From positions 62,001-126,000 of the forward strand of contig NW_021836180.1 of assembly GCF_006345805.1 (NCBI RefSeq): a DNA stretch of 64,000 nucleotides, given 5' to 3'. This DNA comes from Octopus sinensis (Eukaryota). The position numbers were made by a program, and so were the translations under genes. A model generated the notes under the pieces. That model made no database searches. It had not been told where the DNA came from and worked only from the letters and a program-made list of their open reading frames with translations. Positions within the stretch are counted from its first letter, which is position 1, and every line of letters starts with the position of its first letter. Of this stretch, positions 12,397-50,136 are shown piece by piece.

Positions 12397-12551
12397 ATAT
12401 TTTACAGCTGTATAGATATACAAGATATTTTTTTACTGATATTTCAGAGGAATTAGTTGAGTGAAATATACATATATAATTCAAAATATTATAGTATTTT
12501 TCTCGGTTATACAGTAGTGAAAGTTTTAAAATATGAAATAAACAGAAATCG

Positions 12552-15062
12552 TTAGGCAACCATTTTGTTTTTTATGAAGTTTGTAGCTTTTTCTAGTAAC
12601 TTCTCTGAATTCAGTGGTTGTATATTCTGAGATTCCAGCCAAACAATTGCTTTCTTTTCCATTAATTCCCATTCACAATGCTGGGAAGCTAATTTTTCTC
12701 TTAGTACAGCAACAACAAGAGCTGTAGCCCATATTTTATCACTAACAGATGGATTCTCTTTGTTCAGGTCCTTAAGAGAAATATTGAGAGCTTGAGCCAA
12801 TTGATCGTCTAGATTCCAGAAACCAGAGAAAGCTTGTAAGTCAACCAAACATGTTAAAATGTTCTTAATTGTTGTCTCAGAAGACATAAAGGATTCTACA
12901 TCACTCACATTTAATGATCTTCTAAATGTCCGAGACAAGCAATTGGAACCCACAGAATCAGTACCAGAATCATGTTTATAAAAAATCCCAGAATTGTCAA
13001 CTACATTTTCCAAATAACAATTCTGATTTGCTTCCCCCATCATACATGGTAAAATCTCTTTATTTTTTGTCCCAGAAGTGAGAAACGATTTCTCATCACT
13101 CATACTGGATGGTCTTCTAAATGTCTGAGACAAGCAATTTAAATCGACAAACTCAAAGTCAGAATGCCCAAAATCAGCACCAGAATCCACACAATCAACA
13201 TTTATATATTCAAAGTCTTCTTCTAAATCAAGATCGGACTGATTGGCTGGGCAACTAGAAGCTTGTAGAGGTTGAGGTGGTGGTGGTGGTGGTGAAGAAG
13301 AAACCATGCAGGACTTTGGCATACATTCTGGAATACATTGCTTCAAACCAACAAAACTTGTGTACTTTGAAACTAAATTAGCCACTGTACCCAAATCGAT
13401 AATCTCTGATTTTATTTCATCACCTTTACCCAAATCTTCATTTAATTCCAATTCCTGTATTTTCCTTTTCACACAAAGACGGTGTATTGTCATTTCCTTA
13501 TTATTCTGTCCCAACAGACTTGCTTCAAAATCAAGTGAAAAGTCTGATTCACCAATTTTACCACAAAGATTCATTTTCACATTTTTGCAACTAGTCTCAG
13601 CTTCATGTAAAACTAGATAAAGGATTAATTTTTCTTCACTGAAAATACATGGCAGCCTTTCTGGAACTGAAATAAAGGATAATTCTTTATTGTTTTCACC
13701 ATGTTTGGCAGAGAGACAAACCGAAGATACAAATGGTTGCATTGACAATTTTAATAAACGCATAACTTTTGCCTTAAGGTTGTCGTTTGTCATCACAAAC
13801 TCTGCTTGTCCCTTCCCTGCACGGGCAATACCTTTGACCAATTCTGTAGAAGCTCCAGAACCAATACCAATTGTGAAGTATCGTGTGTTGTTTACTTGTG
13901 ACTTGACCAATTGAATGACATCGTTTGTGTTGTAGACTTCACCATCAGTTATTAAGAATACTTGTCGATGGAAATTTTGAAATGGTTTTTTGTCAGAGAG
14001 TGATTTCAGTGCATCAAGAATTTCTGTCCCACCTGAAGCATATAGATTTTTCTGGAATTTCAAAGCTTCATTCAGAGAATCTTCACTATATTCTCGGCTT
14101 CCTTCTCTGAACAGAAAATCAAAATAATTATTGAAGCTGATAACATTAAATGAGCAACCCAAAGGTAAACTTTTTAAGAAAAGTAGCAAAGTATCTTTTG
14201 CTGCTTTAATTCTCTCTCCATTCATGCTTCTTGAGCGATCAATAACAAAAATGTAGTCATTAGCGGCAGATTGTTTTACTTGTGGGAGTTTTGGAAATAC
14301 ATTTATCATCATAATATCTTTAGAAAACATTCCTTTAGAATTCTCATCTCTTTTCTCTAAAATTACTTGTGGTTTTTCTACATCTTCATAGTACACTTGC
14401 AGAAGAAGGTCTTTCTCAAAACTGAATTCCTTTGCCATTCTCACAGTAGCATGACACTTGTTATCCTGATATTCCACCTTAACTGGATGTTCTGATTTGA
14501 TGTCTTTGATTTGTGAATTCCAGTTGACAGAGGCATTGAAACTAAACTCTTTTGGTTTAGGTGCATTTTGATAATTTTCATCTGCAGGTTTAAGACCATA
14601 TCTGGGATTAAGCACAAATGGCATATGAAATTTCACTGCCCCATCAACTTCACAAGAAAGTTCAGAAACAAGGCATATTTGTAAATGGATCTTTTCATTT
14701 GCTGGAATATTACCTAAACTATACTCAAAAATATCGCCAGATGTACTTGTCTCTCGCAACAAAATGGCAGACTGACCTTTATCTACAGCTTCTTTGTATT
14801 CCTTTTTGGCAACATCTTTGTCTTTAGATTTAGCAACTAAATGGACATCACCAATTTTAGCTTCAAATTTATATACGGCACTGTCTTCTTCCACAGGGAA
14901 AACAAACTTAGCTTCTGTCTTGTGTTGGCTTTCATTTATATATTCAGCCTCGATGTTGACGTGTGACGTAAATCCATTAATGGAAATCGTGTGTGTGACA
15001 TAGAGAAGAGAAACTTTTGTTTTCTTTTCACAGATGATTCCAAATACCATTAAACAATCCAT
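12552..15062 (-). CDS. VWA5A: VWA5A-like protein, copy 1 (836 aa): VIT, VWA with MIDAS, 161-aa variable cassette, C-terminal helical domain
   Basis: VIT motifs (EAKFVFP, AVYKFEAKIG); MIDAS DRSRS...GGT...ITDGE; LVSKYTSFV; C-terminal LQAFSGFW...WATALVVAVL...EWELMEKKA. Start placed at MDCL by alignment to copy 3 and the upstream splice acceptor. Confidence 0.88.
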   Translation of the reverse strand: MDCLMVFGIICEKKTKVSLLYVTHTISINGFTSHVNIEAEYINESQHKTEAKFVFPVEEDSAVYKFEAKIGDVHLVAKSKDKDVAKKEYKEAVDKGQSAILLRETSTSGDIFEYSLGNIPANEKIHLQICLVSELSCEVDGAVKFHMPFVLNPRYGLKPADENYQNAPKPKEFSFNASVNWNSQIKDIKSEHPVKVEYQDNKCHATVRMAKEFSFEKDLLLQVYYEDVEKPQVILEKRDENSKGMFSKDIMMINVFPKLPQVKQSAANDYIFVIDRSRSMNGERIKAAKDTLLLFLKSLPLGCSFNVISFNNYFDFLFREGSREYSEDSLNEALKFQKNLYASGGTEILDALKSLSDKKPFQNFHRQVFLITDGEVYNTNDVIQLVKSQVNNTRYFTIGIGSGASTELVKGIARAGKGQAEFVMTNDNLKAKVMRLLKLSMQPFVSSVCLSAKHGENNKELSFISVPERLPCIFSEEKLILYLVLHEAETSCKNVKMNLCGKIGESDFSLDFEASLLGQNNKEMTIHRLCVKRKIQELELNEDLGKGDEIKSEIIDLGTVANLVSKYTSFVGLKQCIPECMPKSCMVSSSPPPPPPQPLQASSCPANQSDLDLEEDFEYINVDCVDSGADFGHSDFEFVDLNCLSQTFRRPSSMSDEKSFLTSGTKNKEILPCMMGEANQNCYLENVVDNSGIFYKHDSGTDSVGSNCLSRTFRRSLNVSDVESFMSSETTIKNILTCLVDLQAFSGFWNLDDQLAQALNISLKDLNKENPSVSDKIWATALVVAVLREKLASQHCEWELMEKKAIVWLESQNIQPLNSEKLLEKATNFIKNKMVA

Positions 15063-15078
15063 ATTGTATTTAAAATAC

Positions 15079-15100
15079 CTGTATAGAAAAAAAAAATAAA
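15079..15100 (-). promoter_or_regulatory. Splice acceptor of a 5'-UTR intron, copy 1
   Basis: ttttttttttctatacag|g, 16 nt before the ATG. Confidence 0.65.
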
Positions 15101-15197
15101 CAAAAATGAATGCAAAAAAACCCCAAAAAATGGAATTATTGAGGATCCTGATGATAATTACATGCAAAGATTAAAATAGCAACACAATTAATTCATA

Positions 15198-19462: not shown

Positions 19463-19915
19463 CGAAGACATTTGACTTTGCTAACACTGAATATGGATTC
19501 CATAAGTTTTGTGATAAAACTCTTCCAACATATTCCTGTGTCTTACAACACTACCCAACAAGTTGTACTTTTGGTCTTTAGTGTTTGTTCTATATTATCC
19601 CATCATGAAACTAAAATGGATTCATCTTAATTTTCATTCTTTTACTTGTTTCAGTTATTAAACTGCGACCATACTGGGGCACTGACTTGAAGATGTGAGT
19701 AGAGCAAATCTCTTAACAGAAATCCAGAATAAGATGTACACATAAATGTCAAGGCTTTTCAAATAGTTTCTAATATCATAAGAATGATAGTAATGATGAA
19801 CCAAGATAAAATACAGATGTGATAAACGTAGGATAGAGTTTTATACAATTATTTGTCTCAGATATTTATTTATTAAAACCTGTTTCTTTAAAGAATTTCT
19901 AATGACAAAAGATGA
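19463..19915. repeat. Downstream-flank block of copy 2, paralogous to 46842-47287
   Basis: Aligns by eye with only scattered mismatches. Confidence 0.9.
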
Positions 19916-19924
19916 GTCAGTTTA

Positions 19925-21661: not shown

Positions 21662-23945
21662 CTAGGCAACCATTTTGTTTTTTATGAAGTTTGTAGCTTT
21701 TTCTAGTAACTTCTCTGAATTCATTAGTTGTATATTCTGAGATTCCAGCCACACAATTGCTTTCTTTTCCATTAATTCCCATTCACAATGCTGGGAAGCT
21801 AATTTTTCTCTTAGTACAGCAACAACAAGAGCTGTAGCCCATACTTTATCACTAATAGATGGATTCTCTTTGTTCAGATCCTTAAGAGAAATATTGAGAG
21901 CTTGAGCCAACTGATCGTCTAGATTCCAGAAACCAGAGAAAGCTTGTAGACCAACCAAACATGTTAAAATATCTTTATTTGTTGACCCAGGAGACAGAAA
22001 GGATTCCTCGTCAGTCACACATGGTACTGTAAACGGGGGAGGTATGCAACTTGAATCCACAGAATCAGCACCAAAAGAATCACAACAAAAAGCAACATCA
22101 TCAATGTCGTCCAATCCTTCAGCAGCTACACGATAATTACTGTATGTTTGCGGTAATGCTAAACACATCATTGGCATGCTACACATTGGCATGCTACACA
22201 TTGGCATAAATTCTGGAACATGTTCATCCAAACCAACAAAACTTGTGTACTTTGAAACTAAATTAGCCATTGTACCCAAATCGATAATCTCTGATTTTAT
22301 TTCATCACCTTTACCCAAATCTTCATTTAATTCCAATTCCTGTATTTTCCTTTTCACACAAAGACGGTGTATTGTCATTTCCTTATTATTCTGTCCCAAC
22401 AGACTTGCTTCAAAATCAAGTGAAAAGTCTGATTCACCAATTTTACCACAAAGATTCAATTTCACATTTTTGCAACTAGTCTCAGCTTCATGCAAAACTA
22501 GATAAAGGATTAATTTTTCTTCACTGAAAATACATGGCAGCCTTTCTGGAACTGAAATAAAGGATAATTCTTTATTGTTTTCACCATGTTTAGCAGAGAG
22601 ACAAACCGAAGATACAAATGGTTGCATTGACAATTTTAATAAACGCATAACTTTTGCCTTAAGGTTGTCGTTTGTCATCACAAACTCTGCTTGTCCCTTC
22701 CCTGCGCGGGCAATACCTTTGACCAATTCTGTAGAAGCTCCAGAACCAATACCAATTGTGAAGTATCGTGTGTTGTTTACTTGTGACTTGACCAATTGAA
22801 TGACATCGTTTGTGTTGTAGACTTCACCATCAGTTATTAAGAATACTTGTCGATGGAAATTTTGAAATGGTTTTTTGTCAGAGAGTGATTTCAGTGCACT
22901 AAGAATTTCTGTCCCTCCCGAAGCATATAGATTTTTCTGGAATTTCAATGCTTCATTCAGAGAATCTTCACTATATTCTCGGCTTCCTTCTTTGAACAGA
23001 AATTCAAAATCATTATTGAAGCTGATAGCATTAAATGAGCAACCCAAAGGTAAACTTTTTAAGAAAAGTAGCAAAGTATCTTTTGCTGCTTCAATTTTCT
23101 CTCCACTCATGCTTCCTGAGCGATCAATAACAAAAATATAGTCATTAGCGGCAGATTGTTTTACTTGCGGAAGTTCTGGAAACACATTTATCATCATAAT
23201 ATCTTTAGAAAACATTCCTTTAGAATTCTCATCTCCTTTCTCTAAAATTACTTGTGGTTTTTCTACATCTTCATAGTACACTTGCAGAAGAAGGTCTTTC
23301 TCAAAATTGAATTCCTTTGCCATTCTCACAGTAGCATGACACTTGTTATCCTGATATTCCACCTTAACTGGATGTTCTGATTTGATGTCTTTGATTTGTG
23401 AATTCCAGTTGACAGAGGCATTGAAACTAAACTCTTTTGGTTTAGGTGCATTTTGATAATTTTCATCTGCAGGTTTAAGACCATATCTGGGATTAAGCAC
23501 AAATGGCATATGAAATTTCACTGCCCCATCAACTTCACAAGAAAGTTCAGAAACAAGGCATATTTGTAAATGGATCTTTTCATTTGCTGGAATATTACCT
23601 AAACTATACTCAAAAATATCGCCAGATGTACTTGTCTCTCGCAACAAAATGGCAGACTGACCTTTATCTACAGCTTGTTTGTATTCCTTTTTGGCAACAT
23701 CTTTTCTTTAGATTTGCAACTAAATGGACATCACCAATTTTAGCTTCAAATTTATATACGGCACTGTCTTCTTCCACAGGGAAAACAAACTTAGCTTCTG
23801 TCTTGTGTTGGCTTTCATTTATATATTCAGCCTCGATGTTGACGTGTGACGTAAAACCATTAATGGAAATCGTGTGTGTGGCATAGAGAAGAGAAACCTT
23901 TGTTTTATTTTCACAGATGATTCCAAATACCATTAGTCTATTCAT
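21662..23945 (-). pseudogene. VWA5A: VWA5A-like copy 2; two 1-bp deletions near 23704 and 23716 (761 aa if repaired); 86-aa cassette
   Basis: ORFs 23664-23945 and 21662-23647 together reproduce copy 3; cttttctttagatttgcaac versus ctttgtctttagatttggcaac. Confidence 0.8.
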
Positions 23946-23961
23946 GTTTGCAATGAAAGTG

Positions 23962-23985
23962 CTAGATAAAATAGAAGGAGAAACA
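23962..23985 (-). promoter_or_regulatory. Splice acceptor of a 5'-UTR intron, copy 2 (copy 3 equivalent at 50153-50176)
   Basis: tttctccttctattttatctag|c, 16 nt before the ATG. Confidence 0.65.
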
Positions 23986-24734
23986 TCTTATTTAGAAATG
24001 ATATATACATGTTGCATTTAAAAGGTTATTTTATTTTTGGCAAGAGATGATAGTGCTAAGTAAATATGACTTCTAATTGCCAGGTCCATTGACAGCAGTT
24101 ATCCTGATAATGTTCTTGGAGGTGCACATGTATGTGTGTGTGGAAGTATGAAGAATCTATTACCACTGCTGTTGCTGCTACAACTCCTACTACTACAAAA
24201 AGTACTGTTGCCACTGGTTGTGCCCTTGTGCTGGTGAATGAGGTAGAGATGGTACACAAATGATGACAATGTTGTCAGAGACAATCATATTTTGCTCCAG
24301 CTTGACCTTGTTCCTCCACAATGATAGTGAAAAGTGTATTGCCCATGACAATCCCATCTCTGTACATACACAGCTTATCTAGTTCTACATTATATAGTGT
24401 GATCCTCCTCATTTAGAGATGGCTGAGTGTGATATGAGGGAGAATTTGTTACTGTTTCTTGTTGGTATGTTATTGTTGTTGAAACTTAAGTCAAACCTAA
24501 ACAGACAAAACTATAATAAAAATAAATTCTAGTCACAATCAAGCCATCTCTCATGACACAGTTTATCTTAGACTATATCATCCTATGTGTTCTTCCTATG
24601 TTTTAAAGACTGCAGGTCATGACTTGAGAGAGGTGCTTGTTACTTGTAGCAGGTCAATAAACCCCATAGTGTATATTGAATTGGCTCATTATGTTTACTG
24701 TTGTTGTTGTTGTTGTTATCATCATCATTATCAT

Positions 24735-25915
24735 CATCATCAAAGCGGCAAACTCGCAGAATCGTTAGCATGCTGGGTGAAATGCTTAGCCGTATTTTGT
24801 CTGCTGCTATGTTCTGATTTCAAATTCTGGTCAACTTTGTTTTTCATCCTTTCCGAGTCGATAAATTAAGTACCAGTTAAACACTGGGGTCAATGTAATC
24901 AACTAGTCCCCTCCCACCAAATTTCAGGATTATTATTATTATTATGTGAAGGTGCAAGGCTCAGTGGTTAGAGCATCGAGCTTACAATCGTGAGGTTGTG
25001 AGTTCAAATCTCGGAGCGGGCTGCGTGTTGTGTTCTTGAGCAAGACACTTTATTTCACATTGCTCTAGTTCACTGAGCTGTAGAAATGAGTTGTGACGTC
25101 ACAGGTGCCAAGCTGTATTGGCCCTTTTGCCTTTCCCTTGGATAACACTGGTGGTGTGGAGAGGGGAGGCTGGAATGCGTGGGCGACTGCCGGTCTTCCA
25201 TAAACAACCTTGCCCGGACTTGTGCCTGAGAGGGTAACTTTCAAGGTGCAATCCCATGGTCAGTCATGACCGAAGAGGGTCTCAGCTCAGCATTATTATT
25301 ATTATCATAATTATTATTAAGGCAGTGAGCAGGCAGAATCGTTAGCATACCAGGCAAAATGCTAACCAGTATTTTACTTGTCTTCACAGTCTGAGTTTAA
25401 ATTCTGCCAAGGTTGACTTTGCCTTTCATCCTCTTAGGGTCAATAAAATAAGTACCAGTTGATCATCGGTGTTTACATTGATCACTGGAGTCGATGTAGT
25501 GTACTTCCCCTTTCCCTGAAAACTGCTGGCCTTGTGCCAAAATTTGAAACTATTATCATTTTTTGTCAGGGCATGGATTGGTAGAATCACTGGCGCATGG
25601 GGTAAAATGTTATGTGTTGTTTCTTCTGGCTCTTTATGTCCTGAGTTCAAATCCCACCAAGGTCAATTTTGCCTTTATTCTTTCAGATTCAACAAAATCA
25701 AGAAACAGTTAAATACTGGTGTCCATGGTACCAATTAAGCCCCTTCTACTCCCATTTCAAAATTTCAGGCCCTTTGCCCACATTAGAAATTATGATTTGT
25801 ATTAATTATTATCTCGTCAGTGATGAGTGAGCAGACTCGTTAGAATGTTGAACAAAATATTTAGTGGTATTTCATTCACTAAAACTGCTGGCCTTGTGCC
25901 AAAATCTGAAATCAT
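24735..25915 (+). mobile_element. Cluster of co-oriented SINEs, including a CORE-like SINE at 24946-25283
   Basis: A box ggctcagtggttagagc, B box gagttcaaatc, CORE-like gtgttcttgagcaagacactt; four further copies of the gctggcagaatcgttag family. Confidence 0.85.
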
Positions 25916-26253
25916 TATCTGTGGTAGTAGTAGTAGTAGTAGTAGTAGTAGCAGTAGTAGTACAAATGGGAGTAGTAGAAGCAGCAGCTTTAGTCATTTT
26001 TATTTTAGCTCAGACATGATTAAGGTAACCTAATTTCAAAGGTATTCTAACCATTAAAATCCTGTCTTTTTGTTAATTGAAGGAGGCTTGGCACTAGTTC
26101 TAGCATGTTGAGTGACTACATAGCATAAGAATGAAAGTAATTTTAAGGAATGCTCTCAAAAGCTATTCAAATAAACTGATATTGCCCTCAAATTTCGAAA
26201 TGCATAAAAATACAGCAATCGGTCATAGACTCATGTCATGTATTAATTATATA

Positions 26254-26652
26254 TACTCTTCTACTTGTTTCAGTCATTTGACTGTGGCCATGCTGGAGCA
26301 CCGCCTTAAGTCGAACAAATCGACCCCAGGACTTATTCTTTGTAAGCCTAGTACTTATTCTATTGGTCTCTTTTGCTGAACTGCTAAGTTACGGGGATGT
26401 AAACACACCACCATCGGTTGTCAAGCTATGTTGGGGAGAACAAACACAAACACATAAACACTCACACAAGTATACATATATATATATATATATACGACGG
26501 GCTTAGTTTCCATCTACCAAATCCACTCACAAGGCTTTGGTTGGCCCGAGGCTATAGTAGAAGGCACTTGCCCAAGGTGCCATGCAGTGGGAATGAACCT
26601 GGAACCATGTGGTTGGTAAGCAAACTACTTACCTCACAGCCACTCCTGCACC
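26254..26652 (-). mobile_element. Full-length tRNA-derived CORE-type SINE (related copies at 33271-33697 and ~38250-38614)
   Basis: Head gtggctgt..ggtaag...ggttcattccc, core caccttgggcaagtg, tail ggcggtgctccagcatggcc...gaaacaagta. Confidence 0.85.
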
Positions 26653-26679
26653 TATATAAAAAATGAAATATGCAGCATG

Positions 26680-27132
26680 TTGACAGAGCGGCTAACTGGC
26701 TTCCATACCAGTGGCACATAAAAAGCACCATTCGTGTGTGATCGTTACCAGTATTGCCTTACTAGCACTTGTGCCCGTGCTAGTAGGGTGCCAAGAGCAC
26801 CATCCGAGTGTGATTGTTGCCACAGGGCACCATTCATGCATGAACGTTACCAGCGCGGCCTTACTGGCACCTGTGCCGGTAGCACGTGTAAAAAGATTCG
26901 AGCGAGGTCATTGCCAGTACCGCCTGACTGGCCTCCGTGCAGATGGCATGTAAAAAGCACTCACTACACTCTCGGAGTGGTTGGCGTTAGGAATGGCATC
27001 CAGCTGTAGAAACTCTGCCAGATCAAGATTGGAGCCCGGTGCAGCCATCTGGTTTGCCAGCCCTCAGTCAAAATCGTCCAACCCGTGCTAGCATGGAAAG
27101 CGGACGTTAAACGATGATGATGATGATGATGT
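26680..27132 (+). mobile_element. RTE-type 3' UTR/tail with internal minisatellite, ending in (GAT)n
   Basis: Same tail follows RTE ORF ends at 34040-34436 and 34679-35180. Confidence 0.75.
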
Positions 27133-28320
27133 GAATTTCGTGCGCAGAAACTGTGTGGAAGCCATCTTTGTGTCTGAGTATAATATATATATGAATATAT
27201 GTGTGTGTGTTTGTGTGTATGAGCACAGGTGTAGCTGTGTGGTAAGAAGTTTGCTTCCCAACCATATGCTTCTAGGTTCAGTCCCACAGGGTGGAACATT
27301 TGAGCAAATGTCTTCTACTATAGCCTCGGGGACAAGTGAAGCCTAATAAGTGGATTTGGTAGACAGAATCAGAAAGAAGCACAGTGTGTGTATGTGTGTG
27401 TGAGAGAGAGAGTATTTCTTTATTCACCACAAGGTTGAGAAAAAGAGGGGACAAAACAAACGTTGGGGTCAGGGTATCGAATGAGACGAAACGTATGAAT
27501 AAACAAACAATTAAAATCTATACAATTAAATGAGAATGAGTGAATAACAAAAAATGAAGCAGAGGACGCAGTTGACCCCACAAACCCCATACTCACACTG
27601 AAGACTTTGCTTTCTCCTTTTTTACATTCTCAATTAAACAGGTTCTTTCACTCGCAACATATTTGCTATAGACTTCTATCTTTTACGAAACACACTTTGC
27701 GACAGGCATTTCTTCTCCAGCCTTATTTTCCGTTTCATGTGGAAAACGAAAAAGTTGATTAGCTGGAGACTGGAGATAAACATGCCTGTTGCAATTCCTT
27801 TTACTCTCGTCTTCTTTCACCATAGCAACTACCGAGAGAAAACAGGCTCGCTCCTCCCTAAGAGTTCGTGTATCTCCTTTTGTCCTCCACCACAACTGGT
27901 GTTTGTTTGCTTAAGTGTATGTAACTTAGCAGTTCGACAAAATAACCAACAGAATGAGAACCAGGGTTAAACAAAAAATATTGGAGTCAATTCGTTTGGC
28001 TAAAATCTCTTCAAGATGGTGCCCCAGTGTGGAATGACGTCAGCAGCTGGACGTCAGCAGCCGGGTGCGTTGACCGGAAGCTAGGGCAACCGGAAGGGGT
28101 CAGCGTCAGGCGTGCGCAGGGAGCGGGGAATTGCGCCCTTTCCAACGTGGGTCGTGGAGGTGACAAGACGTGTGAGGACGTCGCTAAGGATTTGGGCTAG
28201 CAGCTGCTATCGTTAGTGTTCGGGTCGGGGCTGTGTGGAAGGACTAGTCACCGCTGGAGGGTCTCCGTCACTAAGAAGAGAAGGTAGGTGCCTCTATATT
28301 CAAATCGCGCACACACTACA

Positions 28321-28332
28321 AGCTATTTCGGC
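28321..28332 (+). promoter_or_regulatory. Candidate primer-binding site complementary to tRNA-Phe nt 1-12
   Basis: agctatttcggc abuts the LTR; its reverse complement GCCGAAATAGCT matches the metazoan tRNA-Phe(GAA) 5' end as I recall it. Confidence 0.65.
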
Positions 28333-28364
28333 CATTCTTAAACATTTACATTTTTTTCAACACG

Positions 28365-29129
28365 ATGTCCGCAAAAATTAGGATCGCCAGTGACGTCGTC
28401 AGACCTTTTAGTAGCGAAGGCGATGTAGTGGCCTGGATTTGCAAAATCAGGCTGGTGGCAAGACTGCAGGGCATAAGCGACGTGGCGAGTCTTATGGCGC
28501 TGTATTTAGAAGGGAGTGCGTTAACGCTATACCTAGAGATGGATGAAGAGGAACGGCTCAGCGAGGAGAATATAGAGCGACGCTTGTGTGATGCCTACAC
28601 GGAATGCGAGTACACAGCTTTTGCTAAGCTAGGTGCAATCAGGTGGACGGGAGGCCAAGTGGATGACTTTGCATCAGAAGTTAGAAGGCTGGCGACTCTG
28701 GCCGGGTTTGCGGGAGAGGGACTGGAGAGAGCAGCCTGATTGGCGTTCGTGAATGGGTTCCCCGACGATGTAGGGATTCACCTACAACGACTGCCCGGGG
28801 TTAAAAAGATGCCGTTGAGCGAACTTGTAGCTCAGGCTCGCGTGTTGACGAGACACTCTGGGCGGAAGGCGATAGCGATGGCGGTGACGGAGGCGCGTAA
28901 AGACGGACGACGTCCCGAGAAAGAGGTACAGAAGTTTACCGTGCAACGACAGCGGCCGTTCTCAGGACGGTGTTTTAGATGCCAGGGACCACACATGGCG
29001 CGGGACTGTATGCAGCCGGGGCCCGTTTGCTATCGATGCAGGCAGACAGGGCACATTGCCCGTGATTGCGACCAGGGAAACGACCGCGGGGAAATTGCTG
29101 CTTCTCGAACTTTCCCCTCAAATGAGTAG
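28365..29129 (+). pseudogene. gag: Gypsy gag with in-frame stop at 28737-28739
   Basis: Two Zn knuckles, CFRCQGPHMARDC and CYRCRQTGHIARDC; in-phase G GGA AAC slippery heptamer at 29075-29081. Confidence 0.9.
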
Positions 29130-31944: not shown

Positions 31945-32510
31945 GATCAGGGTGGCGTGTGGGATGACGTCAGCAGCCGGGTGCGTTGACCGGAAGCTAG
32001 GGCAACCGGAAGGGGTCAGCGTCAGGCGTGCGCAGGGAGCGGGGAATTGCGCCCTTTCCAACGTGGGTCGTGGAGGTGACAAGATGTGTGAGGACGTCGC
32101 TAAGGGTTTGGGCTAGCAGCTGCTATCGTTAGTGTTCGGGTCGGGGCTGTGTGGAAGGACTAGTCACCGTTGGAGGGTCTCCGTCACTAAGAAGAGAAGG
32201 TAGGTGCCTCTATATTCAAATCGCGCACACACTACACCCAGTATGGCCACAGTCTAATGACTGAAGCAAATGTATATATATATATAAATATGAGGTAACA
32301 AACAAAGGAAAAAATTCCTTCAAAGGTATGTGTAAAACATCCAATTCACTTGTATGTTGGTTGAATACCACATAAATATGGGTATAATGCAAATTACATA
32401 TAATAAATTAAATAGAGAGTTACAAATGACAATCAAATAATTTATTTATATCATAATATAACATAATATACTATGAATATAATATAAGAAACAATCATTT
32501 AAAAAAACAA

Positions 32511-32598
32511 AATAGCCAACAATTTGTTTCGACTTATATACATTTTTTAATATATAAACAATTCAATTCCCTTATATATAAGCCTCATCAGGGCAACT
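32511..32598 (-). ncRNA. Type I hammerhead ribozyme motif (Penelope-like); duplicate at 58702-58789
   Basis: CUGAUGA (32591-32585); 10-bp stem II ggcttatata/tatataagtc; GAAAC; short stem III; GUU triplet (32520-32518); stem I agttgcc/ggctatt with one mismatch. Confidence 0.7.
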
Positions 32599-32832
32599 GG
32601 TGTGTAGAAAGACTTCTTCAGTGTTATGTGTCATGTCTTCAATATTTTGAAGAATTGTATTATTCGGAAGTGAAATATTTTCAGTCTCGCATCACTGCGT
32701 CTTGTTCCATCATTTCGCTCGCTTTCTCTTTTTATTCTACTCGCTGGCATTCATTATTGTTAGGCCCTCAAAAGCGGCGAGCTGGTAGAATTGTTAGGAT
32801 GCTGCACAAATATATTAGCAGTATTTCTACCG

Positions 32833-33170
32833 GTGAAGGTGTATGGTTCAGTGGTTAAAGCGTCGATCTTACGACCATGAGGTTGTGAGTTCGAGTCCCA
32901 GACCGGGCTGCATGTTGTGTTCTTGAGCAAGACACTTTATTTCGCGTTGCTCCACTTCACTCAGCTGTAGAAATGAGTTGCAACGTCACAGGTGCCAAGC
33001 TGTATCAGCCCCTTTGCCTTTCCCTTGGATAACACTGGTGGCGTGAAGAGGGGAGGTCAGTATGCATGGGCGACTGCCGGTCTTCCATAAACAACCTTGC
33101 CCGGACTTGTGCCTCGGAGGGTAACTTTCTAGGTGCAATCCCACGGTCAGTCATGACCGAAAGGGGTCTC
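32833..33170 (+). mobile_element. CORE-like SINE following a truncated SINE head
   Basis: Same family as 24946-25283. Confidence 0.85.
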
Positions 33171-33763
33171 AATTCAAATTCAATAAGGGAATTGAATCGT
33201 TTGTATATTAAAAAATGTATATAAGTCGAAACATATTGTTGGCTGTTTTGTTTTTTCAAATAATTGTTAGTTACTCTTTTACTTGTTTCAGTCATTTGAC
33301 TCCGGCCATGCTGGAGCACCGCCTTTAATCGAGCAACTCGACCCCGGGACTTATTCTTTTGTAATCCTAGTACTTATTCTATCGGTCTCTTTTGCCAAAC
33401 TGCTAAGTAACGGGGACATAAACACACCAGCATCGGTTGTCAAGCAATGCTAGGGGGACAAACACAGACACACAAACGCACACACATACACACATATATA
33501 TATATGTATATATATACATATATATATATATATACGACGAGCCTCTTTCAGTTTCCATCTACCAAATCCACTCACAAGGCTTTGGTCGGCCCGAGGCTAT
33601 AGTAGAAGACACTTGCCCAAGGTGCCATGCAGTGGGACTGAACCTGGAACCATGTGGCTGGTTAGCAAGCTACTTACCACACAGCCACTCCTGCACCTAT
33701 ATTATATTATATTCATAGTATATTATGTTATAATGTAAATAGATAATTGGATTGTCCTTTGTA

Positions 33764-34436
33764 CAGCTTTCCTCATCCATTCATAGTACATGACCATACC
33801 AATGAGAGACGTTTGTGTTGGTATGGTCATATACTGTGGATGGATGAGGAGAGCTGTGAAGAAGTGCCACTCCCAAACAGTGGTAGGAATCCAGGGTAGA
33901 GGGAGACCCAAGAAGACATAGGATGAGGTGGTGAAGCATGACCTTCAAATATTAAGCCTCACAGAGGCAATGACAAAAGACCGAGACCTCTGGAGGTATG
34001 CTGTGACTGAGAAGACCCCGCAAATAAAGTGAATCTTCAGTTGTAACCTACACCAGTGTTGCATAGCCAGCCCACTCAAAAGTACCTTGGATCGTAGAAT
34101 GACATGCCATTCTTGAGGTGACCTATTGAGTCAAGTAGATCAACATCAAATCAAATGGAAATTGTAGTTGTGAGCCCGTGCTGGTAGCACGTAAAAAGCA
34201 CCATCCAAATGTGGCCAATGCCAGTGCCGCTTTGACTGGCTTCCGTGCTGGTGGCATGTAAAAGGCACCCACTACACTCTTGGAGTGGTTGGTGTTAGGA
34301 AGGACATCCAGCTGTAGAAATACTGCCAGGTCAGATTGGGGCCTAGTGCAGCCTCCTGGTTTCCCAGACCCCAGTCGAACCGTCCAACACATGCCAGCAT
34401 GAAAAACGGACGTTAAACGATGATGATGATGATGAT
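33764..34436 (+). mobile_element. 5'-truncated RTE LINE with a foldback at its 5' end
   Basis: RRLCWYGHILWMDEESC...GRGRPKKT*DEVVKHDLQILSLTEAMTKDRDLWRYAV, then 3' UTR and (GAT)n. Confidence 0.85.
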
Positions 34437-34678
34437 TGATATTACTCTTTACTCTTTTACTTGTTTCGGTCATTTGACTGCGGCCATGCTAGAGCACCGC
34501 CTTTAACTGAGCAACTCGACCCCAGTTTGAACTCGGAATGTAGCGATGGGTGAAATCAATGAACAGTAATGACATGTTTGCAGGGTGAAAGCAAAAGATT
34601 GCCGATAAACGTTAGAAAAGCAATTCCTTCCTTTTCGCGTGCTGTGTTCAGCTCTAACTTGTTCTTTGTAAGCCTAGT

Positions 34679-35389
34679 ACATCATCGTCGTTTAATGTCC
34701 GCTTTCCATGCTAGCATGGACGATTTTGACTGAGGGCTGGCAAACCAGATGGTCTTACCAGTCTCCAATCATGATATGGCAGAGTTTCTACAGCTGGATG
34801 CCCTTCCTAACACCAACCACTCCGAGAGTGTAGTGGAAGCTTTTTATGTGACACCGGCATGGGGGCCAGTCAGGCAGTTCTGGCAACGACCTCGCTTGAG
34901 TCTTTTTACACATGCCACCAGCACAGGTGCCAGTAAGGTGGCATTGGTAACAATCATGCTTGAATGGTGCCCTTTTACGTGCCACTGGCATGGAAGTCAG
35001 TTGGCTGCTCTGGCAACGATCACACTTGGATGGTGCTCTTGGCACCCTACTAGCATGGGCACAAGTGCCAGTAAGGCGACGCTGGTAACAATCACACTCG
35101 TATGGTGCTCTTTGCACCCTGCCAGCATGGACGCCAGTCATCAAATTTGATTTTGATTTTGCTTTTGATTGGTTTGATTTGATTTTACTTGCCTCAACAG
35201 GTCTTCACAAGCAGAGTTTTAGTGACCAAAGAAGGAAAGGTTATGCACAAGTGGGCTGGTTACGCCCCTGGCATAGGCCATGAGATTATGGTTTCATTTG
35301 GTTTGCCAAGTCTTCTCATGCACGGCATATTTCCAAGGGTCTCGGTCACTAGTCATTTCCTTGGTGAGGCCTGAAGTTCGAAGGTCGTG

Positions 35390-35392
<3 letters not shown>
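34679..35392 (-). mobile_element. 5'-truncated RTE LINE, convergent with the previous copy
   Basis: KHDLRTSGLTKEMTSDRDPWKYAVHEK ORF end plus the same 3' UTR and tail. Confidence 0.85.
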
Positions 35393-35437
<45 letters not shown>

Positions 35438-35650
35438 TATGTGTGTGTGTGTGTGTGTGTGACTGCGTGTGTATTGTTGGCGATTTTCTTTTTCTGTCTT
35501 CCCTTCCTTGGACCTTTCCTCTTTCTGCTTCTGATGAAGAGCTCCACTCGAAACTTTAAATCCTCCTTCTTTCTTTCCTTCCAAATAACACTATACTTGT
35601 TCCCCGTCCTTGCGTTGTTGTGTTTTCTCTTTGTTCATGTTCGGATTAAC

Positions 35651-35700
<50 letters not shown>

Positions 35701-35718
35701 TATTTATATATATATATA

Positions 35719-36117
35719 CTAGCAGTATAGCCCAGTGTTGCTTGAGCTAGTTTTCTTTTCGACCCTTTAGAATTGGAATTTTTGAAAAGTAAAAATTTTG
35801 CATTATGTAGCTTGTTATTCTCTTTAAGTGAACATTTTTCTGGTTGAAATACCCCGAAAAATGACGACACAGCAGTCAAATAATCGTAAAAAATAGGGAT
35901 TTTCATAGAAAATATAGCACCTTTTTGATGTAAACAAGCTTTGGTGTTAACAAGGTCCGATTTGAATTTTTTCTTCCACAGACGGAAGAGCAAGCCTTAT
36001 TCTATCATACACTCAATTTTGGTCAACTTGTGCCGCAGGGTCTCGGAGGAGATAGTGTTAGTTGAAGGCTACCAAACCTGCCACACACAGACAACTTCAG
36101 CTTTATATATATAGAGA
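35719..36117 (-). mobile_element. Non-autonomous Helitron (399 bp); duplicate at 61915-62313
   Basis: A|TCTCTATATATATAAAG 5' end; CTAG|T 3' end with a subterminal sequence related to the 15198 element. Confidence 0.8.
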
Positions 36118-36639
36118 TACACACACACACACACACACACACACATAAATGTGTGTGTGTTTTTGTATGTACGTTTTTGTATATATTTATACATTTGTGT
36201 GTCTAGATAGCTAGCTATCTATAAACACACACACACACATACACGTATGTATATGTATTCTTTTATTCATTTCAGTTATTTGACTACGTCCATGCTGGAG
36301 TACCGTCTTAAATCAAACAAATCAACCCCAGGTCTTATACCTTGTATGCCTACTACTTATTCTATTGGTCTCTTTTGCCGACTGTTAGGTTATGAGGATG
36401 TAAACACACCAACATTGGTTGTCAAGTGATGGTGGGGGATACAAACACAGACACACACAAATATACACTCGCAGAGATACCCGGCCTTCGTGGGATTAAA
36501 ATGGCATAGATTTTTATTGTTTTACTTGTTTCAGTCATCTGACTGCAGCCATGCTGGAGCACCGCCATTGGTCAAGAAATCAACCACAGGATTTATTCTT
36601 TGTAAGCCGAGTACTCATTCTGTCAGTGTCTTATACCAA

Positions 36640-36875
36640 ACTTATTTCTTTACTACCCACAAGGGGCTAAACACAGAGGGGACAAACAAGGACAGACAAA
36701 TGGATTAAGTCGATTATATCGACCCCTGTGCGTAACTGGTACTTATTTAATCAACCCCGAAAGGATGAAAGGCAAAGTCGACCTCGGCGGAATTTGAACC
36801 CAGAACGTAACAGCAGATGAAATATGGCTACGCATTTCGCCCAGTGTGCTAACAACTCTGCCAGCTTGCCGCCTT
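36640..36875 (-). mobile_element. Full-length tRNA-derived SINE
   Basis: Reverse complement of the ggcggc(g/a)agctggcaga family. Confidence 0.8.
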
Positions 36876-37061
36876 TGCTAAGTTACAGGAATGTAAACAC
36901 AGCAACACCAGTTAGCAAGCAATTGTTGGGCTACAAACACAAAACATGCACACACATACACATATACACGACAGTCTTCTTTCAGTTTCCGAGTACGAAA
37001 TCCACTTACAAGGTTTTGGTTGACCTGAGGCTATAATAAGCATATATATATTATATATATA

Positions 37062-37851
37062 GTAGCTGACATACCCCGTAATTTCCAGGAAAGCGGGCTC
37101 ATCCCTTAGTTCTGTTCTCATAATTGTTTTGCTAATTCAGTAACAACAATACAAAGTATGTAGCCCTTAAAGTATGTAGCCTTGAGAATACCGAACTGTC
37201 TTACAAAGGATCTTGTTTTTTGGAATTCCCAATAAGTTATGAATACTCAAATTGTGAAGTCAGTTATGTAATAACATGAAATTTATTACCCTATAGTAAG
37301 AATTCAAATAATGTAGCCCCAAAAAGGGCTTTAATATGTTCCCAGAGTATATAGATTTTAGGAGGAAATACTAAATGCTTTTGTGCGTTCCCAGAGAATA
37401 TTCCCCTCAGCAGCGCTAGTGTTGCTATATTTGTGAATAAGTCACTAACCGAAATAAGTGGATCTATTGTTTAGGAGAATACTATTTACTTGTTTAAGCG
37501 TTGTCTTGGATAAATTGAGAAAATAACTAAAACACTTCAAATACTAAGAAATAAGCATAATGAAAATGAATGGGTTATTTCCCTTGATGGTTATTTCCAG
37601 GAGGGAATGGGTTATTTCCCTTGGAAGCTTAAAATAATTACTCACACCGTTCACTCATGCCCAAATGTTATTCCTCTTGCTGTTTACCCGAACATTTTTT
37701 CGAAATCAATTAATACTTAAAACCTCCCCAGATACATAAGGAATGTACGTTTGAAGTTTAAGAAAAATTGGTCAAGCCATTTTGATGCAAAAACGAGAAC
37801 ATACCGATACACACACACACGCACAAACACTTTCAGTTTTAATATATAAGA
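37062..37851 (-). mobile_element. Non-autonomous Helitron-like element (~790 bp)
   Basis: A|TCTTATATATTAAAAC 5' end at 37851; 3' cccg...cgggg hairpin then CTAC (CTRR mutated). Confidence 0.6.
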
Positions 37852-38997: not shown

Positions 38998-39031
<34 letters not shown>

Positions 39032-42499: not shown

Positions 42500-42545
<46 letters not shown>

Positions 42546-46064: not shown

Positions 46065-46841
46065 TTAGGCAACCATTTTGTTTTTTATGAAGTTTGTAGC
46101 TTTTTCTAGTAACTTCTCTGAATACAGTGGTTGTATATTCTGAGATTCCAGCCACACAATTGCTTTCTTTTCAATAAATTCCCATTCACAGTGCTGGGAA
46201 GCTAATTTTTCTCTTAGTACAGCAACAACAAGAGCTGTAGCCCATACTTTATCACTAACAGATGGATTCTCTTTGTTCAGATCCTTAAGAGAAATATTGA
46301 GAGCTTGAGCCAATTGATCATCTAGATTCCAGAAACCAGAGAAAGCTTGTAGATCAACCAAACCTGTTAAAATGTCCTTAATTGTTCCCTTTGAAGAGGT
46401 TAAGTCTGAGTGAGGTGACTGTCTTGAATTCTCAGCATTTATACTTAAGGAATTATTTATGGAAGCATACATTCCAGCTATATCTTCTCTCGGACGTACT
46501 GGCATTGGCATAGAGTGTTGTAAAACTCTGTTGTAAAACTTACGGAACATTCTTACTATTGCAGGAACATTCTTACTACGAGAACGCCTGGCTTTAGGTG
46601 TAAATGTCCTAGAGACTGTTTGAATAGCAACTGGAACATGTTCATCCAAAGCAACAAAACTTGTGTACTTTGAAACTAAATTAGCCATTGTACCCAAATC
46701 GATAATCTCTGATTTTATTTCATCACCTTTACCCAAATCTTCATTTAATTCCAATTCCTGTATTTTCCTTTTCACACAAAGACGGTGTATTGTCATTTCC
46801 TTATTATTCTGTCCCAACAACCTTGCTTCAAAATCAGTGAA
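46065..46841 (-). pseudogene. VWA5A: VWA5A-like copy 4: 3' third only (stalk + 91-aa cassette + C-terminal domain), open frame
   Basis: Homology starts abruptly at DFEA; no VIT or VWA domain; 3' UTR block conserved. Confidence 0.85.
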
Positions 46842-47841
46842 GACATTTGACTTTGCTAACACTGAATATGGATTCCATAAGTTTTGTGATAAAACTCTTC
46901 CAACATATTCCTGTGTCTTACAACACTACCCAACAAGTTGTACTTTTGGTCTTTAGTGTTTGTTCTATATTATCCCATCATGAAACTAAAATGGATTCAT
47001 CTTAATTTTCATTCTTTTACTTGTTTCAGTTATTAAACTGCGACCATACTGGGGCACTGACTTGAAGATGTGAGTAGAGCAAATCTCTTAACAGAAATCC
47101 AGAATAAGATGTACACATAAATGTCAAGGTTTTTCAAATAGTATCTAATATCATAAGAATGATAGTAATGATGAACCAAGATAAAATACAGATGTGATAA
47201 ACGTAGGATAGAGTTTTATACAATTATTTGTCTCAGATATTTATTTATTAAACCCCGTTTCGTTAAGGAATTTCTAATGACAAAAGACAATATGAAGCCT
47301 GGTGAGTAATGAACCTATAGCTACATAATGATTATTTTACTTAGTTTTGTAGAGTTAAATGCTTGCTACTCAGTTTGAATGTCTTTAACTGTTTCTCTAC
47401 TATATTTCAGTTGAAATGCATGGCATTTGTTTTGATTAATTTTCAAAATAATGAAGAATTTAGTGATATAACTTTGTCATTATTAAGCTGGTGTTTGGGA
47501 CATAAACTACAACGATGTTTTGAGGGAAGGTTATAATTTCATAACAAACAGGAAGTTTGTGTCACTGAATCCCCAAAAGTGCGTAAATGGTTTTTTTCAA
47601 TCTTGTTTTTAGTCTTGGAAATATATTTACATTTCACACAAAAAAATAACACAAAATCAACAAATATAGGATTATGGCTCTATATTTCATTATATTTTAC
47701 AGCTGTATAGATATATAAAATATTTGTTTACAGATATTTTAGAGGAATTAGTAAAGTATTGATATACAAGTTAAAATGTTAAGGTATTTTTCTCGGTTAT
47801 ACAGTAGTGAAAGTTTTAAAATATGAAATAAACAGAAATCG

Positions 47842-50136
47842 CTAGGCAACCATTTTGTTTTTTATGAAGTTTGTAGCTTTTTCTAGTAACTTCTCTGAAT
47901 TCATTGGTTGTATATTCTGAGATTCCAGCCACTCAATTGCTTTCTTTTCCATTAATTCCCATTCACAATGCTGGGAAGCTATTTTTTCTCTTAGTACAGC
48001 AACAACAAGAGCTGTAGCCCATACTTTATCACTAAGAGATGGATTCTCATCGTTCAGATCCTTAAGAGAAATATTGAGAGCTTGAGCCAATTGATCATCT
48101 AGATTCCAGAAACCAGAGAAAGCTTGTAGATCAACCAAACATGTTAAAATGTCCTTAATTGTTCCCTTTGAAGAGGTTAAGTCTGAGTGAGGCGACTGTC
48201 TTGAATTCTCAGCATTTATACTTAAGGAATTATTTATGGAAGCATACATTCCAGCAATAACTTCTCTTGGACGTACTGGCATTGGCTCTGATTGTTGTAA
48301 AACTTTTTTGGACTTACACAAAAGTTTTGGTTGTGGCGAAGAAGCACAATAACGTATGGCTCTATGTTTTGGAGCTGCCATAGAGGCCATTTGAAAATCC
48401 AATCGAACATGTTCATCCAAACCAACAAAACTTGTGTACTTTGAAACTAAATTAGCCATTGTACCCAAATCGATAATCTCTGATTTTATTTCATCACCTT
48501 TACCCAAATCTTCATTTAATTCCAATTCCTGTATTTTCCTTTTCACACAAAGACGGTGTATTGTCATTTCCTTATTATTCTGTCCCAACAGACTTGCTTC
48601 AAAATCAAGTGAAAAGTCTGATTCACCAATTTTACCACAAAGATTCAATTTCACATTTTTGCAACTAGTCTCAGCTTCATGCAAAACTAGATAAAGGATT
48701 AATTTTTCTTCACTGAAAATACATGGCAGCCTTTCTGGAACTGAAATAAAGGATAATTCTTTATTGTTTTCACCATGTTTAGCAGAGAGACAAACCGAAG
48801 ATACAAATGGTTGCATTGACAATTTTAATAAACGCATAACTTTTGCCTTAAGGTTGTCGTTTGTCATCACAAACTCTGCTTGTCCCTTCCCTGCGCGGGC
48901 AATACCTTTGACCAATTCTGTAGAAGCTCCAGAACCAATACCAATTGTGAAGTATCGTGTGTTGTTTACTTGTGACTTGACCAATTGAATGACATCGTTT
49001 GTGTTGTAGACAGCACCATCAGTTATTAAGAATACTTGTCGATGGAAATTTTGAAATGGTTTTTTGTCAGAGAGTGATTTCAGTGCACTAAGAATTTCTG
49101 TCCCTCCCGAAGCATATAGATTTTTCTGAAATTTCAATGCTTCATTCAGAGAATCTTCACTATATTCTCGGCTTCCTTCTTTGAACAGAAATTCAAAATC
49201 ATTATTGAAGCTGATAGCATTAAATGAGCAACCCAAAGGTAAACTTTTTAAGAAAAGTAACAAAGTATCTTTTGCTGCTTCAATTTTCTCTCCACTCATG
49301 CTTCCTGAGCGATCAATAACAAAAATATAGTCATTAGCGGCAGATTGTTTTACTTGCGGAAGTTCTGGAAACACATTTATCATCATAATATCTTTAGAAA
49401 ACATTCCTTTAGAATTCTCATCTCTTTTCTCTAAAATTACTTGTGGTTTTTCTACATCTTCATAGTACACTTGCAGAAGAAGGTCTTTCTCAAAATTGAA
49501 TTCCTTTGCCATTCTCACAGTAGCATGACACTTGTTATCCTGATATTCCACGTTAACTGGATGTTCTGATTTGATGTCTTTGATTTGTGAATTCCAGTTG
49601 ACAGAGGCATTGAAACTAAACTCTTTTGGTTTAGGTGCATTTTGATAATTTTCATCTGCAGGTTTAAGACCATATCTGGGATTAAGCACAAATGGCATAT
49701 GAAATTTCACTGCCCCATCAACTTCACAAGAAAGTTCAGAAACAAGGCATATTTGTAAATGGATCTTTTCATTTGCTGGAATATTACCTAAACTATACTC
49801 AAAAATATCGCCAGATGTACTTGTCTCTCGCAACAAAATGGCAGACTGACCTTTATCTACAGCTTGTTTGTATTCCTTTTTGGCAACATCTTTGTCTTTA
49901 GATTTGGCAACTAAATGGACATCACCAATTTTAGCTTCGAATTTATATACGGCACTGTCTTCTTCCACAGGGAAAACAAACTTAGCTTCTGTCTTGTGTT
50001 GGCTTTCATTTATATATTCAGCCTCGATGTTGACGTGTGACGTAAAACCATTAATGGAAATCGTGTGTGTGGCATAGAGAAGAGAAACCTTTGTTTTATT
50101 TTCACAGATGATTCCAAATACCATTAGTCTATTCAT
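47842..50136 (-). CDS. VWA5A: VWA5A-like protein, copy 3 (764 aa, intact); 89-aa cassette
   Basis: Uninterrupted ORF; MIDAS DRSGS...GGT...ITDG; same domain layout as copy 1. Confidence 0.92.
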   Translation of the reverse strand: MNRLMVFGIICENKTKVSLLYATHTISINGFTSHVNIEAEYINESQHKTEAKFVFPVEEDSAVYKFEAKIGDVHLVAKSKDKDVAKKEYKQAVDKGQSAILLRETSTSGDIFEYSLGNIPANEKIHLQICLVSELSCEVDGAVKFHMPFVLNPRYGLKPADENYQNAPKPKEFSFNASVNWNSQIKDIKSEHPVNVEYQDNKCHATVRMAKEFNFEKDLLLQVYYEDVEKPQVILEKRDENSKGMFSKDIMMINVFPELPQVKQSAANDYIFVIDRSGSMSGEKIEAAKDTLLLFLKSLPLGCSFNAISFNNDFEFLFKEGSREYSEDSLNEALKFQKNLYASGGTEILSALKSLSDKKPFQNFHRQVFLITDGAVYNTNDVIQLVKSQVNNTRYFTIGIGSGASTELVKGIARAGKGQAEFVMTNDNLKAKVMRLLKLSMQPFVSSVCLSAKHGENNKELSFISVPERLPCIFSEEKLILYLVLHEAETSCKNVKLNLCGKIGESDFSLDFEASLLGQNNKEMTIHRLCVKRKIQELELNEDLGKGDEIKSEIIDLGTMANLVSKYTSFVGLDEHVRLDFQMASMAAPKHRAIRYCASSPQPKLLCKSKKVLQQSEPMPVRPREVIAGMYASINNSLSINAENSRQSPHSDLTSSKGTIKDILTCLVDLQAFSGFWNLDDQLAQALNISLKDLNDENPSLSDKVWATALVVAVLREKIASQHCEWELMEKKAIEWLESQNIQPMNSEKLLEKATNFIKNKMVA

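Follow-up and report, generated by a model that had tools for sequence, protein, structure and literature searches.

The window analysed here, 64,000 nucleotides (nt) of Octopus sinensis contig NW_021836180.1 (positions 62,001 to 126,000 of the forward strand), contains four tandem copies of a gene related to that of von Willebrand factor A domain-containing protein 5A (VWA5A). The copies have a real constant-variable-constant architecture, in which a body at the N-terminus and a domain at the C-terminus are nearly invariant and enclose an in-frame linker, called the cassette below, that is not. The array belongs to a tandem expansion of intronless VWA5A-like genes in the Octopus lineage, and the pattern is a fairly ordinary one. 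It is probably the outcome of birth-and-death and concerted evolution in a family of putative cytosolic adaptors with a freely evolving tether; an immune bait system, as envisaged in an earlier note on this DNA, is not demonstrated. The locus documents a cephalopod-specific tandem expansion of a conserved, poorly understood and probably intracellular family, and would provide a clean natural case in which folded domains are homogenised by conversion and duplication but a disordered linker is spared and keeps old lineages.

Sequence comparison suggests how such a pattern could arise. Duplication of a 26-kb segment, unequal crossing-over and gene conversion would keep the two constrained folded modules near-identical. 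The linker, whose residues appear to be under no detectable constraint and of which only the frame is kept, would gain substitutions, in-frame indels and internal duplications. Once diverged, it would halt homology-dependent conversion tracts at its edges. Old linker lineages would survive on a homogenised scaffold for that reason, and recombination breakpoints would therefore gather at or within the cassette.

The gene copies and their annotation

The copies, with coordinates in the window and lengths in amino acids (aa), are as follows.

12552..15062, minus strand: copy 1, an intact single-exon VWA5A-like coding sequence (CDS) of 836 aa plus stop; body 13344-15062, cassette 12861-13343 (lineage A1, 161 aa), C-terminal domain 12555-12860
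12350..12551, minus strand: 3' untranslated region (UTR) of copy 1, ~200 nt, conserved, with an AATAAA signal
21662..23987, minus strand: copy 2, a VWA5A-like gene with a broken frame; cassette 21971-22228 (lineage A2, acidic, 7 Cys, 86 aa), C-terminal domain 21665-21970
46065..46841, minus strand: copy 3, a 5'-truncated fragment with only the last 65 body codons, the cassette (46374-46646; lineage B, basic, 91 aa) and the C-terminal domain (46068-46373)
46836..47287: repeat at the truncation point of copy 3, 98.5% identical to 19460-19912
47842..50136, minus strand: copy 4, an intact single-exon CDS of 764 aa plus stop; body 48418-50136, cassette 48151-48417 (variant of lineage B, 89 aa), C-terminal domain 47845-48150

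Cassette coordinates and lengths (161, 86, 91 and 89 aa) reproduce those of the earlier note exactly. That note had also described three full-length copies. Their 573-aa body and the 20 residue differences between copy 1 and the last copy (copy 4) stand, but copy 2 has a broken frame. Compared with copy 4 it lacks a single nucleotide at each of two sites, ~23717 and ~23705, 12 nt apart. These deletions place its first 96 codons in another frame; they could be genuine or assembly indels. In copy 3, homology to the other copies stops at 46841, against the repeat listed above, which is probably a dispersed or mobile element. The 102-aa C-terminal domain is present in all four copies with 5-9 differences per pair, close to the six or so counted before. 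Also common to the four is the 3' UTR of ~200 nt with AATAAA, the equivalents of the copy-1 sequence lying just below 21662, 46065 and 47842.

A Pfam scan detects VIT (PF08487, E 4e-28) in copies 1 and 4 and, because of the frameshift, only part of it in the copy-2 open reading frame (ORF). It also detects VWA_3 (PF13768, E 1e-23), and nothing beyond the VIT and VWA families. The metal ion-dependent adhesion site (MIDAS) motif can be read intact in the translations as DRSGS or DRSRS (DxSxS), GGTE and TDG. The nearest named proteins are the von Willebrand factor A domain-containing protein 5A-like proteins of O. sinensis, O. vulgaris, O. bimaculoides and Argonauta hians. The VWA5A-like identity proposed earlier is thus borne out by the VIT and VWA domains with MIDAS, by the C-terminal domain and by the names that NCBI gives to the homologs.

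The CDS is annotated as a single exon in O. vulgaris (including P0013, the ortholog of copy 1) and in Argonauta. Two NCBI models, P0006 and P0007 (766 aa), consist of the copy-4 body with the cassette and C-terminus of copy 3, joined across a 1.77-kb pseudo-intron (46728-48498). Such a join would mean that linker diversity arises by RNA splicing, with partial copies downstream of a full-length one, such as copy 3 after copy 4, serving as alternative 3' exons. One canonical GT-AG junction is possible (48498/46728), and copy 3 retains an open frame and a 3' UTR with AATAAA. This is nevertheless a distinctly improbable account of the array. The only junction, AAG/GTGATG to ...GGGTAAAG/GTG, has no polypyrimidine tract and falls within a stretch identical in both copies, a classic spliced-alignment artefact across tandem duplicates. 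The homologous B fragment of O. vulgaris has a premature stop, and no transcript or assembly contig encoding either the exact copy-4 protein or the NCBI chimera is on record. The two chimeric models are a probable artefact of this kind. The scallop isoforms X1 and X2 were considered as a parallel for splicing and set aside; they differ at the extreme C-terminus (repetitive read-through) and not in the linker.

Three cassette lineages

The cassette is preceded by SKYTSFV(G/A)L and followed by ILT(C/G)LV in all four copies. All four cassettes are in frame and stop-free, as reported earlier. The absence of stops is not due to chance: shuffling the nucleotides gives an open frame in just 0-0.5% of cases, and 4-19 stops occur in the two alternative frames. 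Numbers of acidic (D/E) and basic (K/R) residues in cassettes 1 to 4 are 24/12, 15/2, 7/15 and 8/13. The earlier count for copy 2 is therefore right, but the 7 versus 15 that it gave for copy 4 belongs to cassette 3. The description of the cassettes as largely unalignable holds between classes and not within them: cassettes 3 and 4 are 69% identical in protein and 87% in DNA, with near-identical C-terminal halves, and the last ~35 aa are common to cassettes 1 and 2.

Sixteen cassettes were compared, from O. sinensis, O. vulgaris, O. bimaculoides and Argonauta, together with that of protein P0016 (species not assigned). Lineage A1 comprises copy 1, the O. sinensis locus L004, O. vulgaris P0013, O. 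bimaculoides P0014 and P0016 (62-100% identity). Lineage A2 comprises copy 2, L018 and O. vulgaris P0010 and L031a (63-82%), with O. bimaculoides P0012 as its most divergent member (46-49% identical to the others). Lineage B comprises copies 3 and 4, L003, L008 and O. vulgaris L032a (63-99%). Between lineages identity is 18-45%. A1 and A2 are acidic and Cys-rich and occur also in O. vulgaris and O. bimaculoides; B is basic and occurs beyond O. sinensis in O. vulgaris only. As judged from these sequences, the cassettes represent three old lineages, neither individually hypervariable nor members of an open-ended repertoire.

The Argonauta cassette is close to no Octopus lineage (22-35% identity). 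It consists of Cys-Met-Pro repeats and then an acidic run, and ends as in Octopus. All cassette classes have in common their first residues (DEHV or KK..P), an M-P-M motif and their last ~10 residues; the classes would therefore be diverged descendants of one ancestral linker. Across the family the linker ranges from 64 to 318 aa, in keeping with the earlier statement that it is poorly conserved. The cassette of L018 is a mosaic, with a 5' piece that resembles copy 4 and a remainder that resembles copy 2 (A2), and that of copy 1 owes its length to an in-frame internal duplication of 65 codons:

12846..13165, minus strand: internal duplication in the copy-1 cassette, with 125-nt repeats at 12846-12970 and 13041-13165

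These repeats are in frame, 195 nt (65 codons) apart and 75% identical; O. vulgaris P0013 and P0016 have the duplication too.

Three other origins for the cassette were considered and rejected. It does not derive from a transposable element or a dispersed repeat: outside the VWA5A-like copies, the only matches to cassette DNA in the 2.7-Gb genome are two short ones in proline codons. Class B is not class A DNA read in a shifted frame, because the other two frames have no similarity (z <= 1.6; the maximum for frame 0 is z = 2.1). Nor is the cassette an unrecognised intron, being stop-free beyond chance and lying inside CDS annotated as single exons in O. vulgaris and Argonauta.

Class A cassettes (for example 13040-13260, minus strand, and L004) contain repeated short motifs of the form D-(F/S)-(V/E)-(D/F)-(S/V), such as DFVDS, DSVDS, DFEFVD and EEDFEYI. 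In sequence these acid-flanked aromatic motifs resemble short linear interaction motifs.

Homogenisation of the flanks

Two segments of the window are copies of one recent duplication.

22216..37808: first copy of the segmental duplication, covering the copy-2 body and 13.8 kb upstream
48405..64000: second copy, reaching the end of the window

In a self-comparison they are 99.795% identical over 15,603 columns, with a period of 26.19 kb. The 26.2-kb unit repeats beyond the window, where copies 3 and 4 have 100% identical twins. Part of the apparent homogeneity of the scaffold is therefore owed to this very recent duplication. Copies 1 and 4 lie outside any one common duplication, yet their bodies show only the 20 differences given above.

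In copies 2 and 4 the block of identity sets in 12 nt within the cassette. In these two copies the body and upstream sequence are virtually identical, the cassettes differ (A2 and B) and the tails are 95.5% identical. The start of the block is a recombination junction at the cassette edge.

Between O. sinensis copies whose cassettes belong to different lineages, there are 0-1 differences in the final 60 residues of the body and 1-6 in the 102 residues of the tail. Copies with the same cassette lineage differ between O. sinensis and O. bimaculoides at 2-9 of 60 and 6-10 of 102, and both O. bimaculoides paralogs carry common species-specific flank residues. For these two species, then, paralogs within a species are closer than lineages between species, the mark of concerted evolution, and the scaffold is indeed homogenised relative to the linker, as had been supposed. 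Between O. sinensis and O. vulgaris orthology is still traceable (copy 1 with P0013). In trees the cassettes are deep (branches 0.1-0.5) and the flanks shallow (depth <= 0.04). The C-terminal domain of L004, an A1 copy, clusters with B-cassette copies, including its neighbour L003, from which it differs by 1 aa (Shimodaira-Hasegawa-like approximate likelihood ratio support 93).

At least 14 copies or fragments are present in the genome (2.7 Gb in 13,516 contigs), most of them in the same contig. The intact ones are copy 1, copy 4 and its twin, L003 and L004 on the chromosome-scale contig C16, and L009, an outparalog with 76% identity. Several of the remaining copies are frameshifted, truncated or heavily degenerate. 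About half of all copies are pseudogenes or fragments, which is consistent with birth-and-death evolution.

It might be asked whether much of this array reflects haplotype or repeat mis-assembly in an unplaced contig, so that homogenisation of the scaffold is overstated. Units of 26 kb that are 99.8-100% identical, the LOW QUALITY flag on P0008, the NCBI model of a frameshifted neighbour, the closeness of the two copy-2 deletions (only 12 nt apart) and the fragmentation of the genome would all fit such an origin. We consider it improbable. In the independent, chromosome-level assembly of O. vulgaris, 6 or more copies or fragments are clustered; they were sampled in two 22-kb loci ~73 kb apart and have A1, A2 and B cassettes. 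In O. sinensis itself, contig C16 also has A1 and B copies, and the similarity of copies 1 and 4 does not depend on a shared duplication.

Protein architecture and relatives

An AlphaFold2 model of copy 4, run on an 18-sequence alignment, has a predicted local distance difference test score (pLDDT) of ~90 in the body and tail and of ~28 across the cassette (residues 574-662), with values <50 at residues 577-660. The cassette is thus predicted to be intrinsically disordered between two confident domains. MIDAS residues T372, D373 and G374 are invariant in an alignment of the family. The pattern FG.I...V.L at the N-terminus recurs across phyla, and the model places residues 8-11 in a strand of the fold; the N-terminus thus appears to be a conserved strand of the fold, which would argue against a signal peptide.

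The best structural match to the body is ITIH1 (PDB 6fpy; E 3.9e-32 over ~620 columns), which shares the VIT-VWA fold with the octopus body at a sequence identity of only 14%. ITIH proteins differ from the octopus proteins in that they are secreted, have signal and propeptides and lack a C-terminal domain of the octopus type. Metazoan VWA5A (BCSC-1/LOH11CR2A), the name that NCBI applies to the octopus, scallop, abalone and amphioxus homologs, is closer in plan. The octopus proteins resemble it in their VIT and VWA_3 body with a DxSxS MIDAS, variable linker, helical C-terminal domain of ~100 aa, apparent lack of a signal peptide and total length of ~760-840 aa. Unlike other VWA5A, they are encoded in a single exon (a feature also of Argonauta), have expanded in tandem to 14 or more copies or fragments, carry linkers of three lineages that are opposite in charge, and have recently been duplicated in 26-kb segments.

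Only one solved chain matches the whole length, including the C-terminal domain. This is an axonemal VWFA protein of Trypanosoma brucei (PDB 9e5c chain 4s), which matches the full-length protein with E 1.6e-25 over 894 columns and the C-terminal domain alone with a probability of 0.97, a TMq of 0.63 and a profile E of 3.7e-3. An architecture of this kind can therefore dock into a large cytoskeletal assembly. The chain is a component of a protist flagellar doublet with 14-18% identity, and the octopus proteins are likened to it by fold and sequence.

The octopus proteins may be cytosolic modules for MIDAS-dependent binding, with a flexible linker and a helical docking domain. The charge of the linker, acidic and Cys-rich or basic, may tune the binding function. 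A more elaborate proposal is that the protein is a modular adaptor, its MIDAS head docked through the C-terminal domain, which would be like the MINT domain of PARP4, into the vault, another cage or a cytoskeletal structure. Three exchangeable disordered linkers, either acidic and Cys-rich with repeats of D-F-V-D-S type or basic, would then set specificity for cargo or partner, new combinations arising by exchange of cassette plus tail among tandem copies, truncated donors such as copy 3 included, or by splicing into such donors. We regard this combination as a long shot.

Selection on the cassette

Nei-Gojobori (NG86) counts were pooled over five phylogenetically independent close pairs; sequences were few and counts small. 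Ratios of the proportions of nonsynonymous and synonymous differences (pN/pS) and values of pS were as follows.

Body: pN/pS 0.41, purifying (P = 0.003); pS 0.019
Cassette: pN/pS 1.45, not different from 1 (P = 0.16); pS 0.043
C-terminal domain: pN/pS 1.22, with 14 changes in all; pS 0.008

Against Argonauta, the ratio of nonsynonymous to synonymous rates (dN/dS) is 0.13 for the body and 0.15 for the C-terminal domain; a look-up of contigs with the DNA of O. bimaculoides P0014 gave none on record. The excess of pS in the cassette over that in its flanks suggests that the flanks have been homogenised, and not just that selection acts on the cassette at the amino-acid level. Pairwise values of pN/pS for the cassette range from 0.8 to 1.9. 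The copy-1 cassette has no substitutions in 160 codons relative to its O. vulgaris ortholog P0013, and a single indel of one Pro codon.

These numbers bear on a proposal that builds on the earlier note, namely that the cassette is a positively selected, diversifying module for recognition or bait, immune-like or cargo-selecting, whose repertoire is kept for the sake of diversity. The proposal has attractive features. Almost all close pairs have a cassette pN/pS of 1 or more, the frame is invariably kept, the classes are opposite in charge and unlike in Cys content, modules have been shuffled between copies, and the family has expanded in Octopus relative to the one copy in the 22-kb Argonauta locus that was sampled. 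We nevertheless think it unlikely. The ratio is not significantly greater than 1, the lineages number just three, and the copy-1 cassette lacks any substitution relative to its O. vulgaris ortholog. The cassette is predicted to be disordered, about half of the copies are broken or truncated, and no signal peptide is indicated.

The analogy that the note had drawn with the bait regions of A2M and TEP proteins is not supported either. The likeness is confined to a poorly conserved segment between conserved parts in a multi-copy family. According to Pfam the octopus proteins have no MG, A2M or thioester domains, their fold matches are ITIH and VWA proteins, and no significant positive selection was found on the octopus cassette. 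The A2M/TEP bait is a protease bait within a cage, whereas the cassette, predicted to be disordered, is a terminal tether between two domains, and the N-terminus is a modelled strand of the fold. Nothing relevant was found in the literature on VWA5A in octopus or mollusc hemocytes, and the array does not reveal a new mechanism of immune diversification.

Birth-and-death and concerted evolution with a freely evolving tether remains the preferred explanation, and several observations sit uneasily with it. Point estimates of cassette pN/pS exceed 1, with 1.2-1.9 in several pairs, and the cassettes of copy 3 and L003 differ by 0 synonymous and 8 nonsynonymous changes; the cassette may therefore be under weak positive selection. 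Frame-breaking indels, which the earlier note would have expected of a neutral linker, were found in no cassette, not even where the copy is broken at another site. That classes A and B have net charges of opposite sign would be striking if drift alone were at work. A duplication boundary right at the cassette edge is unlikely for a random crossover in a 1.7-kb body. The O. bimaculoides paralogs are less homogenised, with differences at 6 of 60 and 8 of 102 residues. Finally, the low pLDDT of the cassette may stem in part from a shallow alignment.

The C-terminal domain and PARP4

The C-terminal domain has no Pfam model but has 660 relatives at E <= 1e-3. Most of those checked are VIT-VWA or VWA-only proteins of many phyla that carry it at their C-terminus; the others are C2-domain proteins or have no Pfam match. 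Modelled alone, it forms six helices with a pLDDT of 90, and its invariant residues are Q, G, W, T, W, K and W. Its occurrence in the T. brucei flagellar doublet-microtubule protein (9e5c chain 4s), and in several copies in large C2-domain proteins (P0097 and P0162 are noted in this connection), marks it as a mobile helical module that is specific to neither VWA5A nor PARP4.

The earlier note had likened this domain to the vault-interacting region of PARP4, and the resemblance is partly upheld. When a 32-sequence profile was compared with the PDB, the top match was PARP4 1571-1643, at a marginal E of 7.6e-4. A single-sequence phmmer search of the PDB with the domain gave no match. Body residues 35-575 align to PARP4 639-1180 (E 3.6e-36), and the C-terminal match is colinear with this alignment. 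PARP4 (PDB 9bw6, 9bw7, 11jf) has the same order of VIT-VWA, long variable spacer (~1180-1562) and helical C-terminal domain; its BRCT, WGR and PARP catalytic domains have no counterparts in the octopus proteins by Pfam. Homology of the C-terminal domain to the PARP4 MINT domain is therefore plausible as a reading of the sequences and, if true, bears on the function of VWA5A.

MINT comprises PARP4 residues 1562-1724, and its contacts with the major vault protein (MVP) are made by S1614 and K1618, in the basic h4-h5 region, and by R1689 (PMC12280208). In our alignment S1614 and K1618 belong to 11 residues inserted in PARP4, for which there is no counterpart in the profile or in the octopus proteins, whose loop at this site is acidic (NDENPSLSDK). 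R1689 is outside the aligned portion, which covers only about the first half of MINT. A Foldseek search of the PDB with the pLDDT-90 model returned no PARP4 chain among the best 50 matches; the best was 9e5c_4s. The octopus genome does encode MVP (PF01505 matches on contig C26). Binding of MVP (repeats 3-5) or packaging into vaults through the octopus C-terminal domain, and with it the suggested vault-associated system, is not inferable from such weak evidence.

Other features of the window

The first 2331 nt are a satellite of a 13-bp unit (GATGAAAATGTTT) in ~180 copies with 74% matches; the GC content of 25.6% and the strong GC skew with which the window begins are due to it. At 4366-5680 there are tandem arrays whose periods are 52, 73 and 147 bp (69-85% matches). 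Just upstream of copy 1, at 15575-16776 on the minus strand, two adjacent ORF fragments match PIF1-like helicase (PF05970, E 1.8e-41; Pif1 2B domain, E 1e-10) and are probably a remnant of Helitron/Helentron type or of a decayed helicase.

The 26-kb segmental duplication contains a long terminal repeat (LTR) retrotransposon at 28050-32236 (plus strand), duplicated at 54241-58427. The element is G-skewed, with 55% GC against a background of ~37%, and its 271-bp LTRs are 98.9% identical. Its ORFs are broken; examined piecewise, they match a gag zinc knuckle, reverse transcriptase, an RNase H-like domain and an integrase zinc-binding domain. On both sides of it lie older repeats, 24946-27122 and 32833-34973, which are 85-89% identical and have duplicates at 51137-53313 and 59024-61172. 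Two of these repeats are direct and one is inverted (26824-27122 and 34680-34973), an arrangement that suggests an earlier duplication or paired copies of a mobile element.

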